Source: Aplysia californica (lineage: Eukaryota). Taken from it: a stretch of DNA of 64,000 bases. The notes under the pieces were generated by a model. It saw only the letters and a list, made by a program, of their open reading frames with translations. It did not search any database and was not told the DNA's origin. The stretch spans positions 1,617,255 to 1,681,254 of the forward strand of contig NW_004797298.1 in the NCBI RefSeq assembly GCF_000002075.1, in the 5' to 3' direction. The position numbers and the translations under genes are program-made. This document shows positions 39,467-58,256 of this stretch, in pieces; position 1 is the first letter of the stretch; the number at the start of each line of letters is the position of its first letter.

Positions 39467-40234
39467 TAATTGTCCAAAAAGTGACCAGCCGTGAGACATA
39501 GAGTTGATAACTATACAAGTCCCCTTTTATGCAGCCCTTCGACAAAGCAAGAATGTTGGTACAAACAACTTACTAAGTGCGAGCTGAGAGTATGGCTAGT
39601 GTCAAGGGGCCCATCAGCCCCAGCCTGGAGACTCCGGCGGGATCGTCACGTATGCCAATGCTTGACCAGCTCTGTGGATGGGAGAGGGGAAAAATATAGT
39701 AAACTGAGTTTTAAAAAAGCATGCTGACCTGATAAATAGCGATTTAGTGCAGGGAAAAAAATCAGACAGGAGCAATAGAGGGAAAGTAAAAAAGTTCATT
39801 CTCGCGCCTGATTCTTTCTTGTAACTCAGTTCAGGTCGTACTCTGTACATGACAGTGAAGCCCTCAGAAGAGGCCAGAACAAGGGCGGGTGTTATCAACA
39901 TCCATCGAGAACAAGCTAGCCAGGAAAAATCATGTTCTGTCAACACCTTTGCTACATGGACACAGGACAATGCCACTGCCAATCCCAAGTGACGTAAAAA
40001 AAAAAATTTACTTGTTTTACACCCTCACCTACACAATCTAAATCATTCAGAAGGTGGTGGGCTGCTTCCACCCTGCCTGCCAGGACCAACCGAGGGTGAA
40101 AGGGATAAACATCTCAGCAGAAAGGGACATACGGAGGGGAGGGGGTGGACACCTCCAAAAACCACCTGTTTAAGGATTTGACCACACATCTTCCACAGAG
40201 GGCCTTAATGGTGGTTTGCATGACTGTATAAAGA

Positions 40235-40312
40235 GGGTCAGATACTATCTAGCAATTGCAGAGGCATCATTGCTTTATGCACTCACTGCAAATAGGCTAT
40301 ACATCATTCCCC
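40235..40312 (-). ncRNA. Box C/D snoRNA, copy 1
   Basis: Same boxes and guide; terminal stem GGG/CCC; candidate acceptor ccttaaacag about 70 nt downstream. Confidence 0.85.
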
Positions 40313-40586
40313 AATACATTATTACCTGTTATAAGTGAGTCATTTTTAGAATAAGTATTGTGATGCACTTCAAAAATTATAACTTAAAAACATACATTAA
40401 TTTAATGCTTTAAAATCTAAAGAAAAAATTAAGTCCCCAGTGGAATATCACAAAAACACCTGCCTCAGACCCATGGCTCTGTTTGCACAAAATGTTAACT
40501 CTGAGCACGTAACTGTTTACTTCCTACGAACTTGATATCACAATCTCTTGACACATACCCTCTGGAAATAAAGTATTAATGTATAG

Positions 40587-40665
40587 GAGGTCAGATACTA
40601 TCTAGCAATTGCAGAGACATCACTGTTACGTGGACTCACTGCAAAGGAGTGATACATCATTCCTC
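40587..40665 (-). ncRNA. Box C/D snoRNA, copy 2
   Basis: Same boxes and guide; compensatory terminal stem GAGG/CCUC. Confidence 0.85.
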
Positions 40666-41012
40666 AAAACCACAAACCACCACATGAGTAACAAAAAAAC
40701 CCCAAAAAAGTTTTTTTTAAATCATTTTTTAATAAAAATGGAGGCATTAGCCACCCCCCCCCCCCAAGATATGTGGGCACTAGTAACATTTTTCTGTCAG
40801 TGTCAGTTACATTTTGATAACTTGGACCCTCCTCTAAAGAACCCATTCACTTTTACTTTGTTCAAACAACACCGTCGGTTCAGAGCCACTTAGCATATTG
40901 TACCTTTCCGTGGTTCGATCAACTACTTTGGTTCCACAAGCAAAACCCTTAACTGGCAAAAGTGTAAATCAAAACACAAATACAACCAATAATCTTGTAA
41001 ATATGTATTAAA

Positions 41013-41091
41013 GAGGTCAGATACTATCTAGCAATTGCAGAGGCATCACAGTCTGGTACACTCACTGCAAAATTGATATACATCATTCCCC
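41013..41091 (-). ncRNA. Box C/D snoRNA, copy 3
   Basis: Same boxes and guide; terminal stem GGGG/CCUC with a G-U pair; candidate 3' splice site cacttttgccag about 60 nt downstream. Confidence 0.85.
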
Positions 41092-41269
41092 ATTATAATA
41101 ATAATACATACATCACCTAATGGCTCAGACAATGATTAATAACAGCCATGACAACCCATGACACATTTATTTTACACTCAAACATAAATATTAATGTTTG
41201 TTAGGAAACATTCTACATCTTCAACAATACTAGCACTGTCCTTCACAACACAGCCAAACTTCTGTCTCA

Positions 41270-41470
41270 AAACAATCGGTAGTTATCATTTAACAAATAA
41301 TGTGAGATACCCTGAGATAACATCGAGTTGAACTTAGATATCCCGAGATATCCCCCCCTGAGATAACACCGAATGTAGTTATCATTTAACAAATAATGTG
41401 AGATACCGTGGGATATCTTGAGATAATCTGAGATATCCTGAGATAACACCGAAACGAACTTGAGATCAAA
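41270..41470. repeat. Short tandem/GAGATA-rich repeat between snoRNA copies 3 and 4
   Basis: GTAGTTATCATTTAACAAATAATGTGAGATACC twice; multiple CTGAGATA. Confidence 0.6.
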
Positions 41471-42031
41471 AGTTGCATTTTCTTGGAAATCCGAAACAAT
41501 GGCGGAATCTGTTTTCTTGGAAATTAAATGCAAAACGTGTTTTCTTGGAAATCCGAGATTAATTAATCTATATTTAATTTGTTTATGCCCGCTAGTTAGT
41601 ATCATTTCAACTGTATATCCAGAGCGGAACGACTCTGCACATCCAGTTACAGTAATTTGACCAAAAGCACATCTAGGTATGGTATTAAGATAACTTGGAC
41701 TAGAAATATTATGTATTGTAGTTGATTGGAATGTCGTTTATTTTGACCTTGGTTTTAACCATGTAATCATTGAGACTTTCTACAATGCATAAGATATTAT
41801 GTACATGTAATCTATGTTACACCATTCATTGACTGTTACATTATGTATGTTATGAATGTACAAACCATTTGATTTCATTGACTTATTTGTTGACATTCTT
41901 TTACCTGTACCTTCCTTTAACAAAACATATCACCATTTGTTTCTATACTTCACAATCTTAAATCACACTCGCTGTGCTCAGTGTCGGTTAGACGTGACGA
42001 TCATGTACACTCACATATTATATTGACAGAA

Positions 42032-42107
42032 GGGGTCAGATACTATCTAGCAATTGCAGAGGCATCATTGTTAGGACTCACTGCAAAGGTGTGGTACATC
42101 ATTCCCC
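42032..42107 (-). ncRNA. Box C/D snoRNA, copy 4
   Basis: C box ATGATGT, D box CTGA, guide GCTAGATAGTA, terminal stem GGGG/CCCC. Confidence 0.85.
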
Positions 42108-42189
42108 AAAACCAAAATAATAATAATAATATAACCAGAAGAACAGAGGCATAAGCCACAAAAAAGCAAGGGTAGTTTACTATTCTATC

Positions 42190-42920
42190 TTCATATATAA
42201 GGCTGTAGACACTAGTTCAACTTTTTTGTTAGTTGTTGTTTGATGTGATGCAAGCATCAGCGTCACTGGGTCTGAAGATTTTGTGCTTTTGTCTCTGAGA
42301 GATGTTGTAATGATTGGCTTTTTTAAAGAAAGGTGGGGAGGGATGTTTTGGTTGACTCTTTTGGTTTCTTTTCTGTTTTGTGGTAGATGGTGACTCTCCA
42401 TTAGTTCTGTGATGTGATGAATGATTGACTTTTGTTGAATTTGTTTCTTTGGTTTCCATGTTTCTACTAATTTCCTGTTTGGGTGGTTGGGGCACATTCT
42501 ATTAGTTCTTTCATGTAGTTCCAAACTGCTTTATCCTTGCGGATTCCCGGGGGTTCAACATTTGAAAGGATTTCGCACGCGGCGGTAGGTGTGGATCTCA
42601 TGCCACCATTTATAAAACTAAGGGCATTGTTTTGGACCTTGTCAAGGGTGTTGCAAGTAGTTGTACTGCACATAGTGAGTAGGCTATTGCTGTATTCCAG
42701 GGAAGATCGGACATAACCAAGGTATAGAGCTCTCAGAGTTTGTTTGGCTGATCCCCATAAACTGCTTGCGAGTTTCTTTCAAAGTTGTTTGCCTTGTTCA
42801 TTATGTTCTCCACTTGGCTTTTCATGGTAGACTATGATCAAGTTTGACTCCTAGGTAAGTTGGATGTTCTGCTTTGGGAAGACTTTCATTTCCTATCTTT
42901 AGTTTGAGAGTTGGTGGCAT
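42190..42920 (-). mobile_element. Degenerate non-LTR retrotransposon fragment (RT C-terminal region, I/Jockey-group-like)
   Basis: Frameshifted YLGVKLD...TLRALYLGYVRSSLEYS...LDKVQNNALSFINGGMRSTP peptides. Confidence 0.7.
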
Positions 42921-43034
42921 TATTGCTGTCACACATTATCCCTATACTATCCCTCCAACCTCTAAAAAGATCCACTCACACTCTCACTATTTAGAGCACT
43001 AGATCAAAGATTTCTGTCACAATAACTCTTACAG

Positions 43035-43143
43035 AATACATAATATCACAACTGAAAGAGCTGCGGAGTTGGTCTACCATAGAAAACAGCATCTCCCCTC
43101 GACGCTTAACGGCAACAGAGGATGAAAAGTAAAGTAAGTAAGT
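43035..43143 (+). mobile_element. 5'-truncated LINE tail insertion related to 25310-25650
   Basis: 14-bp TSD AATAACTCTTACAG (43021, 43144); shared TCCCCTCGACGC motif and (TAAG)n tail. Confidence 0.7.
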
Positions 43144-43359
43144 AATAACTCTTACAGCACGGTATACAACCCTGGGTCAAAGATTTCTCTGTCAAATAAC
43201 ATTGTGTTTACATCAAACGTTAAAACTAGACAAACTTTTTGCTCTTTTCTCTCCCTGCCCCTGCTATCCAACAGCACCCAAGTGGTAAGAGCCATGTCAT
43301 TACGAGAAGTAATAAATGGGTCAAAATATACATTTATGGTGTCTAATCTACATATGTTA

Positions 43360-43440
43360 AGGGGTCAGATACTATCTAGCAAATGCAGAGGCATCATCGC
43401 TGTGTGCACTCACTGCAAAGTTGGTATACATCATTCCCCT
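43360..43440 (-). ncRNA. Box C/D snoRNA, copy 5 (28S guide, snR65-like target)
   Basis: AGGGG-A-ATGATGT...GTGA...ATGATGC...TTTGCTAGATAGTAT-CTGA-CCCCT; terminal stem AGGGG/CCCCT. Confidence 0.85.
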
Positions 43441-43764
43441 ACACCATACTGTATGATTCTACACATGACCAGATGGCTGAACCAAGTCCAGATAACAGAA
43501 CTTCAAGTCAAAAGTCAAGCTTCAGATTACATGAGACATTTTTGTGGGTTCTGACGAGGTTTTAAATAGGAGCAAATCTTTTTCAAATGGGAGTGTGGTT
43601 GTAATCCGTTTTCTAACATCCTTGCAATACTACTTAATAGCATGTCACTTAATTAATATACCCCTCCCCCTCTCCATCCCAAGAAAAAAAAAAAAAATAA
43701 TCAGAATATTGTTTAAAAACCAAAACAAATACTCAACACCAGTTCACATAATGTGACTACTTAC

Positions 43765-43833
43765 TGAGTTCCTGGAATCTGATACGCTGACTGCCCTCTT
43801 GAATCAAAGACCAACAAGCCATCATCTGATAAG
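43765..43833 (-). other. Candidate YY1 downstream micro-exon (69 nt); open in phase 2 as (C)LSDDGLLVFDSRGQSAYQIPGT
   Basis: ctttttgccctttttctag acceptor and CA/gtaagt donor; length divisible by 3. Confidence 0.6.
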
Positions 43834-44656
43834 CTAGAAAAAGGGCAAAAAGAGACTTTTCAGCAAACATAGAAAATGGTGCAGAGCAGAGTGGGTGAGA
43901 AAAAAAAATGCAGTTGACAGACAAAGCTAACATGGGGTTCTTCTAACCATCTCATTAGTACCTAGATTTTGTTTTAAAAGAATCCCCTGATGTCCTTTGT
44001 TAATATTATTAGTGAACACAATGGGGGGGGGGGGGGGGGGGGGGGNNNNNNNNNNNNNNNNNNNNNNNNNNNNNNNNNNNNNNNNNNNNNNNNNNNNNNN
44101 NNNNNNNNNNNNNNNNNNNNNNNNNNNNNNNNNNNNNNNNNNNNNGGGGGGTTTGAAGGGAAAATGGTATCCCAACTCTTATCGAACTGATACTTCTCTT
44201 TTTCTTTTCTTCTTGTTTATACCATTACCGGCCGCACCTGAGACAAATGTTACAGAGAACTTATTTTCAAAACATAAGCCATAAACAACAACCTCAGCTC
44301 TCTTATTTTCTTTAAAAAGAATTGGTTCTAACAATGAATGTCTTTTAAAACTTTTTTTTTTTTAAAATCAAATCTCCTCACCTCATAGTACACTGCTGGC
44401 AAAAGGTATGAATTTGACACGATAAACAAGACAGGGAGAAGAGAACTTTCCATTGGGCAGACTTTATGTCCCATAGTGCTCTACATACACACAAACAATA
44501 AAATCAGTTCAGGAAATTTGAAAATGAAAATGACAGCCAGCAAATAAATAATCTTTGACTTGGTCATTTTGGTGGGTGGGGGGTGACATATTTGCTCTGC
44601 TTACAGCAGAAAGAGAAACAAAAACAACATCAATATTGGGAGAAACAACGACTTAC

Positions 44657-44722
44657 CACTGATCACCATCCACAGAGCCTTGGTCAGAGAACACCAACAT
44701 TGTTTTGGATGATCTGTCTACC
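44657..44722 (-). other. Candidate YY1 downstream micro-exon (66 nt); open in phase 2 as (K)VDRSSKTMLVFSDQGSVDGDQ
   Basis: gtgttctgtctccag acceptor and TG/gtaagt donor; length divisible by 3. Confidence 0.6.
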
Positions 44723-46124
44723 CTGGAGACAGAACACAGTGTTGCATTATTTGTTTTTATTGGGGGGGGGGGCACGCAAGTGTTTTATGGCACTCACAAC
44801 TGCCTAAGCTCATTCTATGAGCAAGCAGGACACATTAAACATTTAGTTTCATCTGAATTTTTTTTGTTGCCCTGGTGGCCTCTGAAGCCTACTATTTTAT
44901 AAATTTTAAGACCACCAATGGACCTTCAACATGCGCAAGTTGCACATGGGACCTGCGAGATTTTTCACCCTTATCCGAGAAGGCTAGGTGTTAGATCTTA
45001 CCTACCATAAGATCAGGGGTGTGGCTGAAAGACAGCAGTAAGAAGGTGCCAAAGAGTAGCAGTAGAAAGAGTCAGGAGCCCAGAGGAGAGGGCAAAGGGG
45101 AGGGGGGCAAGAAAGTGGAGGCGAAAGCAGAAAACAAAACACGGTTAGAGAGCAGGAAAGGAGGTGAAAGGAGAAATTTTAGAGAAGAAAATGTTCAGTC
45201 GCTGCCCCGTTTCAAACCCCAGGACCTATTAAATGAGAGGTGAACACCATAATCTCTAGACCACAAGAGCCCCCCGTCGCCCCAGGTCTACACAGTGAGA
45301 CACATGTACGTGTAAGCTGCAAGCACTTTTCACCCACAATAACTACTTCATAAATCCATGAGTAATCAAGTATTGATCAATAATAAAAAATATCATACTC
45401 TAATACAAAGAAGTGGGATTTGGTGGTCGTCCTGTAGAAACGTGAATCGTCACAGTCATTACAGCATAGCCTCACTTTTATTCTTTTTTTTCTTCAGGTT
45501 TCCAGCTATTGATATGGTAAAAACATTAACTACTTGTTTCATATGCAGCAGGGTTCTGTTTCATGTAAAAATAATCTAATCATTGAGACTTTCACCTTTC
45601 TCCCAAAAAAAATATAAATAAAATTTAGGAAATAAATAAAAAACATGATCACGCAATTGTGTTGTGATCTTACAATATAGACAAGAGATACATATGATGA
45701 CCGAGCAAAAAAGCCACCTTTCGTATATTAAGTTGTTAAATTTTGCATACTATATCCAGCACTCTATGAGATCAGCCAGTCTGAAGTCAGATGTGAGTGC
45801 CATTATGCCAAATAAGATGGAATCCCACCCAAAGACAATAGTTTAGGGGACTATCACAAACAATGCCATTATAAACATGTTACACTCTGGTGCCCCTGCC
45901 CGTTTAAGCACATACATGCGTTTTAATATAACAAAGCTTGTTACTTGTGTAGACTCTGGCAGCATACTGTAACTAGCAATATACAGAGGATTTCTATTTA
46001 TTTTATTTTTTATAAAGCAAGAAGAAGCGTACGGTCAAGGGGTGGGCAGTGTAAGGTACAAGAACAGGACAGCAGTATAATGAGAATGGACTATTTGATG
46101 CAAAGAAACTATATCAATCCCTAC

Positions 46125-58256
<12,132 letters not shown>

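Follow-up and report, generated by a model that had tools for sequence, protein, structure and literature searches.

The 64,000-nt stretch of Aplysia californica DNA analysed here (contig NW_004797298.1, positions 1,617,255 to 1,681,254; hereafter the window, to which all coordinates refer unless stated) contains, on its minus strand, an array of five short related elements downstream of the exon that encodes zinc fingers 3 and 4 of the transcription factor YY1. We conclude that these are very probably five paralogous genes for a single box C/D small nucleolar RNA (snoRNA), which lie in sense orientation in the last coding intron of YY1 and would guide the methylation of U2678 in large subunit (LSU) ribosomal RNA (rRNA). 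What carries this conclusion is the observed sequence anatomy of the elements, their complementarity to rRNA, their copy number, their location in the intron and their orthology. The sequence-only reading that preceded this work had proposed a box C/D snoRNA shaped by selection on an RNA, as opposed to a transposon, and this proposal is now backed by rRNA complementarity, covariation in the terminal stem, a genome-wide total of six copies and the presence of orthologues in two further gastropod genera.

Anatomy and conservation of the five copies

The elements were first read by inspecting the minus strand of 40100-43600, and their size ranges from 76 to 81 nt over all copies (78-81 nt for the five in the YY1 array; Table 1). 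Each opens with a 4-nt G-rich stem arm and a single A, followed by box C (AUGAUGU, which begins 6 nt from the 5' end), by about 8 variable nt and by UUUGCA-GUGA, the last four letters of which form box D'. A variable loop of 10-13 nt leads from D' to C' (UGAUGC or UGAUGU), downstream of which an invariant stretch runs through GCUAGAUAGUAU to box D (CUGA, 4-5 nt from the 3' end) and then to the complementary 3' stem arm. No differences among copies occur in box C, in UGCAGUGAG, in the UGAUG core shared by the C' boxes, in the UGC-to-UAU extent of the guide or in the sequence CUGACC, whereas the region from box C to D' and the D'-C' loop vary freely among them.

The column identities bear out the earlier description of fixed boxes and guide with divergent loops: columns inside the elements average 89% identity, with no variation in any box or in the 3' guide. 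Outside the elements, 250-nt flanks could not be aligned past roughly 10-15 nt, in agreement with the claim that the sequence between copies is unrelated, although this alignment is partly confused by the overlap between the flanks of copies 4 and 5. All five minus-strand copies that had been listed from the sequence were found again, with the 17-nt core made up of the guide and box D occurring exactly 5 times in the window and 0 times in 100 shuffles.

Across the 927-Mb assembly, BLAST identified the five array copies and one more on contig C248, and a covariance model built from these six (R1) again returned exactly six hits in the whole genome. No poly-A tail lies next to the copies. With six genomic copies by both searches and no adjacent poly-A, we excluded a short interspersed nuclear element (SINE) or other dispersed repeat, the alternative that the sequence-only reading had itself held up against its interpretation. 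The sixth copy is placed 176 nt from the 5' splice site of its intron and ~836 nt from the next exon. Its host was recognised from two longer adjoining exons, which match human proteasome activator subunit 4 (PSME4/PA200) with E values of 3e-7 and 2e-13; Pfam and PDB searches with two short exons gave no support for this identity.

To these six sequences can be added one from each of two land snails, Candidula unifasciata and Bradybaena similaris (see below). Across the resulting eight sequences from three genera, boxes C and D are both invariant, and no sequence has an unpaired position in the 4-bp terminal stem (8/8 paired). At one position of this stem, copy 3 has G-U and copy 4 has A-U where the other six sequences have G-C, and at a second position Bradybaena has A-U. 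Three sequences extend the stem outwards by a fifth pair, either A-U or G-C. The covarying terminal stem claimed earlier is thereby upheld, by two independent compensatory changes (G-C to A-U double changes, with G-U intermediates) in a stem that always remains paired. The observed covariation measures were matched by only 2-5 of 500 column shuffles of the eight sequences, a small sample with a clear direction. For the internal UUGCA/UGCAA stem that had also been put forward, the pairing exists in the Aplysia copies, but no covariation supports it and the land-snail sequences form it less well.

The same data bear on a different account of the array, in which one copy, or none, is functional and the rest are decaying duplicates or a low-copy mobile element with snoRNA-like boxes. 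Retrocopies and pseudogenes of snoRNAs are common in animal genomes, which gives this account some initial appeal. A decaying copy, however, would have lost its boxes, stem pairing and guide, whereas here, against saturated flanks, the five copies and two other genera share the same boxes C and D, stem pairing and ~22 nt of guide, and copy 4 has preserved its paired stem through a compensatory change. The lack of poly-A tails at the copies and the total of six in the genome speak against a mobile element. We consider decay or mobility of this kind very improbable, and favour five paralogous snoRNA genes.

Table 1 Positions of the snoRNA copies and of the YY1 features around them (window coordinates, except for the sixth paralogue)
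Feature	Position	Strand	Description
Box C/D snoRNA copy 1	43360..43440	-	81 nt; 103.9 bits, a score by construction, the model having been built from the same copies
Box C/D snoRNA copy 2	42031..42108	-	78 nt; 100.9 bits, likewise by construction from a model of the same copies
Box C/D snoRNA copy 3	41012..41092	-	81 nt; terminal stem with G-U
Box C/D snoRNA copy 4	40586..40666	-	81 nt; compensatory A-U in terminal stem; C' = UGAUGU
Box C/D snoRNA copy 5	40233..40313	-	81 nt
Sixth snoRNA paralogue	G000:C248:208729-208804 (L003:1507-1582)	+	Intronic, sense, in the PSME4 (PA200) orthologue
YY1 exon, zinc fingers 3-4	46129..46304	-	Apparent stop TGA at 46127-46125 inside the donor AA/GTGAGT
YY1 coding exon	44657..44722	-	66 nt, phase 2-2, encodes VDRSSKTMLVFSDQGSVDGDQ; 44722 joined to 46129 in X11 and X6
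Penultimate YY1 coding exon	43765..43833	-	69 nt, phase 2-2; joint 44657 to 43833 in X11, depth 87.6; tblastn 100%
Last YY1 coding intron	39672..43764	-	4,093 nt, GT..AG; five copies and spacers that look partly transposon-derived
Last YY1 exon, coding part	39614..39671	-	AGQALAYVTIPPESPGWG, then stop; canonical acceptor; protein match

The 3' guide and its predicted rRNA target

Both guide regions of each copy were scanned against the genome's own small subunit (SSU), 5.8S and LSU ribosomal DNA (rDNA), which was found on L011. The 3' guide forms an uninterrupted 13-bp duplex with LSU rRNA, extended to 14 bp in copy 1 by a single A-to-U difference in the guide; it covers positions 2-14 or 2-15 upstream of box D and contains 12-13 Watson-Crick pairs, whereas the runner-up rRNA matches are rich in G-U and have no more than 5. 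LSU U2678 (in the numbering of the L011 rDNA copy; the single U set off in UAC-U-AUCUAGC) stands opposite the fifth nucleotide from box D, which is the canonical register for a methylation guide.

The stretch of LSU rRNA that includes this uridine is one that we take to be universally conserved and to carry, in yeast 25S rRNA, Cm2337, psi2340, Um2347 and psi2349. The same four modifications are tabulated in the literature, with Um2347 assigned to snR65 (PMC5699541, Table 1), and Aplysia LSU, which has C at -10 and U at -7, 0 and +2 relative to the target, fits the pattern of modified bases in that table. The target uridine is predicted to be the equivalent of yeast 25S-U2347, the site of snR65. 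The Aplysia RNA would then resemble snR65 in its predicted target, judged by sequence context and neighbouring modified bases, as well as in RNA class and in the use of the fifth-nucleotide rule. It differs from snR65 in that sequence homology between the two is undetectable and no Rfam family, snR65 included, is recovered at E values up to 10. The likeness may reflect shared ancestry or a shared target only. The human site, U3797, is reported to be both methylated and pseudouridylated (PMC3542256), and SNORA48 is given for the pseudouridine (PMC3511933); searches of the literature, partial in coverage, returned no usable paper on the C/D guide of human 28S-U3797.

The antisense region upstream of D' is different in all six Aplysia copies, and no copy has a D' guide that matches the genome's own 18S, 5.8S or 28S rRNA with at least 10 Watson-Crick pairs. 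This 5' guide region is probably unconstrained and probably without a target.

The last coding intron of YY1 in Aplysia and land snails

The sequence-only reading had ended YY1 at 46127 and had made the host of the snoRNAs a 3' extension of its transcript, asking whether each copy has an intron of its own. The TGA taken as that end sits in a splice donor, and three more coding exons follow (Table 1). Annotated YY1 proteins (P0165 and P0164) were recovered by a search with the lineage-specific N-terminal region of a YY1 fragment. Exon 1 of annotated Aplysia californica YY1 (P0165) is identical to that of the window, and the C-terminus of the protein continues beyond AKAK through two short exons to the final residues AGQALAYVTIPPESPGWG. 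When the annotated protein was compared exon by exon using tblastn, every exon was found in the window, at 91-100% identity overall and at 100% on both sides of the array, and the two NCBI isoforms of YY1 differ upstream only. Since the same C-terminal exons are encoded in proteins from Bradybaena, Candidula, Pomacea and Nucella, they can be regarded as genuine coding sequence.

Transcript contigs and reads were placed on 40177-46176, a region that stops short of the last exon at 39671. They yielded minus-strand contig joints with GT..AG boundaries from 46129 to 44722 (X11, depth 87.6; X6) and from 44657 to 43833 (X11). By arithmetic on the binned depths, the X11 contig covers the 43833-43765 exon precisely, with coverage ending at 43765, and from there passes out of this region. 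In the annotated model, all five copies lie on the sense strand inside a single YY1 coding intron of 4,093 nt. The idea of YY1 as host is retained in so far as the copies lie, in sense, within the annotated YY1 gene; the 3' extension is replaced by a coding intron, which in the annotated model is shared by all five copies. An independent promoter is not required.

The YY1 exons around the array share further features. The exon ends at 46125-46129, 44653-44657 and 43761-43765 (minus strand) are all in phase 2, with donors G/TGAGT or G/TAAGT in which the bases +2 to +4 form an in-frame stop, and retention of any of these three introns would therefore end the protein at once. The short exons, at 66 and 69 nt, are of lengths such that skipping either preserves the frame, and both encode an LVF(S)D-like motif similar to the very C-terminal end of YY1 from other invertebrates (P0033, P0085). 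The intron between the exons that end at 44657 and begin at 43833 contains a 100-N assembly gap (44046-44145) with long poly-C runs on both sides.

Annotated mollusc YY1 loci were obtained by exact-protein look-up and searched using the covariance models. The search of related genomes near YY1, which had been suggested with the original observation, turned up orthologues in Candidula unifasciata (one match, 71.5 bits, E 5e-15) and Bradybaena similaris (one match, 58 bits, E 1e-11). Each is sense-strand and falls between the penultimate and last coding exons, in the intron that holds the array in Aplysia; the distances to the 3' splice site are 712 and 828 nt. In neither does box C, box D or the 3' guide depart from the Aplysia sequence, whereas the remainder has diverged. 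No credible match was found by the covariance models in YY1 of two Haliotis species, Littorina saxatilis or Babylonia areolata, nor in the second YY1 paralogue of Bradybaena (L020). A marginal match in Babylonia (E 0.47) was rejected for lacking box D and the guide. We infer that the location in this YY1 intron is older than the split of Aplysia from the stylommatophoran snails and that the five-fold amplification took place on the Aplysia side, the land snails having one copy each. Hosting by YY1 appears to be confined to heterobranchs in the loci sampled. A second YY1 paralogue, without a snoRNA copy, is a feature of stylommatophoran snails (L020; P0211, P0284, P0285).

The arrangement of splice sites invites a different reading of the array, in which the annotated 4.1-kb intron is one splicing path among several, and an alternative YY1 isoform (largely non-coding or targeted by nonsense-mediated decay) or a separate host transcript carries short cryptic exons between the copies, giving one copy per intron as in GAS5 and Uhg. 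AG acceptors followed by GT donors can be picked out by eye 25-100 nt downstream of each copy, in a reading that is unscored, and run X6 includes low-depth unspliced contigs over 40377-41576. Among the joints listed, however, none falls inside the array; the bins that would hold the candidate mini-exons have a depth of 0 to ~4 in X11, compared with 87.6 for YY1 exons; and the differences between the two NCBI isoforms are all upstream. The distances of the single land-snail copies from their 3' splice sites, given above, also argue that proximity to a splice site is no feature of the family. One intron per copy is unlikely on this evidence, and a single coding intron that holds all five copies is preferred.

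Proposed processing and comparison with known intronic clusters

Expression of the snoRNAs, their processing and the methylation that they would direct are predictions drawn from this layout. RNA polymerase II would transcribe the five copies within the YY1 pre-mRNA. Box C (AUGAUGU), box D (CUGA) and the 4-bp terminal stem would form a kink-turn for Snu13, Nop56, Nop58 and fibrillarin to assemble on, so that each unit would be shielded by these core C/D proteins. Once the 4.1-kb intron has been spliced, cleavage in the spacers and exonuclease trimming would free five RNAs of ~80 nt, in the manner of the intronic clusters known from rice and Drosophila. The invariant 3' guide of each RNA would then pair with LSU rRNA over 13-14 bp and direct 2'-O-methylation to U2678, which faces the fifth nucleotide upstream of box D.

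Several observations weigh against this interpretation. Box C has a U at position 7, where RUGAUGA would have an A, and in place of CUGA the D' box reads GUGA in the Aplysia copies and AUGA in those of the land snails. C' is UGAUUU in Candidula; C' and D' are both degenerate, as is common in box C/D snoRNAs. Rfam gave 0 matches in the whole window at gathering thresholds and, over 39500-44500 at E values up to 10, only two chance matches, both to bacterial cis-regulatory families, so that the Rfam check proposed with the sequence-only reading recovered no family for the copies. The basis for the junction from 43765 to 39671 is the NCBI model, the orthologous exon structure and the depth arithmetic. 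Coverage of YY1 is very sparse in two raw polyA RNA-seq runs (X21 and X22), whose placed reads come nearly all from repeats and which for this reason are uninformative on snoRNA expression or on splicing in the array. Intronic C/D snoRNAs of metazoans (as known from mammals) usually lie ~70 nt upstream of the 3' splice site; the copies here lie 561-3,688 nt from it, and their processing would therefore differ or be inefficient. The predicted equivalence of the target with yeast U2347 draws on sequence context and on the base-identity check.

Intronic clusters of snoRNA genes have been documented in rice and Drosophila (PMC2780460), and Huang et al. 2004 and 2005 are cited on such clusters in PMC5932544. 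The clusters of rice and Drosophila melanogaster resemble the Aplysia array, with its five copies in 43764-39672, in having several sense snoRNA genes in one host intron. They differ in that the Aplysia members are all isoforms of one C/D snoRNA, that the host is the transcription factor YY1 and that the animal is a mollusc. GAS5, SNHG1 and Drosophila Uhg likewise place C/D snoRNAs in tandem on a single transcript, spaced by non-conserved sequence, but those hosts are mostly non-coding and have a separate intron for each snoRNA, whereas the Aplysia host encodes a conserved protein and has five copies in one coding intron.

The arrangement described here is real but fairly ordinary; it would not surprise a specialist and does not overturn current understanding. 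The appeal of an unusual host, which the sequence-only reading had stressed, falls away because the supposed 3' extension is an ordinary coding intron. Our literature searches brought up no publication on such snoRNAs in Aplysia or on snoRNA hosting by YY1, which, given their partial coverage, is weak evidence of novelty. The analysis nonetheless adds a snoRNA family outside Rfam with an assignable, deeply conserved predicted rRNA target, and it re-reads the 3' end of YY1 in the window, with coding exons beyond 46127. It also supplies an example of host-gene turnover, the snoRNA being present in the final YY1 intron in Aplysia and two land snails but missing from YY1 of the caenogastropods and abalones examined, and one of local amplification into an intronic cluster, an organisation already known in rice and Drosophila. 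For Aplysia neurobiology, YY1 transcription is predicted to give a ribosome-modification guide as well.

A bolder version of these ideas would make YY1 a conserved, lineage-specific snoRNA host in heterobranch gastropods, with polycistronic processing that depends on an endonuclease and is coupled to splicing, and with six D' elements that possibly have targets other than rRNA. We hold this version to be unlikely. If true, it would reveal a polycistronic endonuclease-dependent route in a lophotrochozoan, with a guide amplified far from splice sites, and D' targets outside rRNA would tie YY1 expression to new RNA-modification activities.

Repeats make up part of the sequence in and around the array. 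Between copies 1 and 2, the stretch ~42180-42980 (minus strand) reads like the C-terminal part of a reverse transcriptase from a long interspersed nuclear element (LINE), and it is adjoined at 42977-43130 by a short repeat with a poly-A end. Both have repeat-level depth with many mismatches in all runs, and together they probably account for the long spacers. Part of the spacer has very high repeat depth in all runs and thus looks transposon-derived. A tRNA-derived SINE-like repeat at ~44780-45380 (also in L003 at ~2590-2990) has very high depth in every RNA data set, with up to ~86,000 summed contig depth, and is the source of most of the spurious joints and loose ends. In the Littorina (L017:1-1836) and Babylonia (L021:1-1768) loci, YY1 has a lipid desaturase gene (Lipid_DES / FA_desaturase) as its immediate upstream neighbour, in head-to-head orientation.

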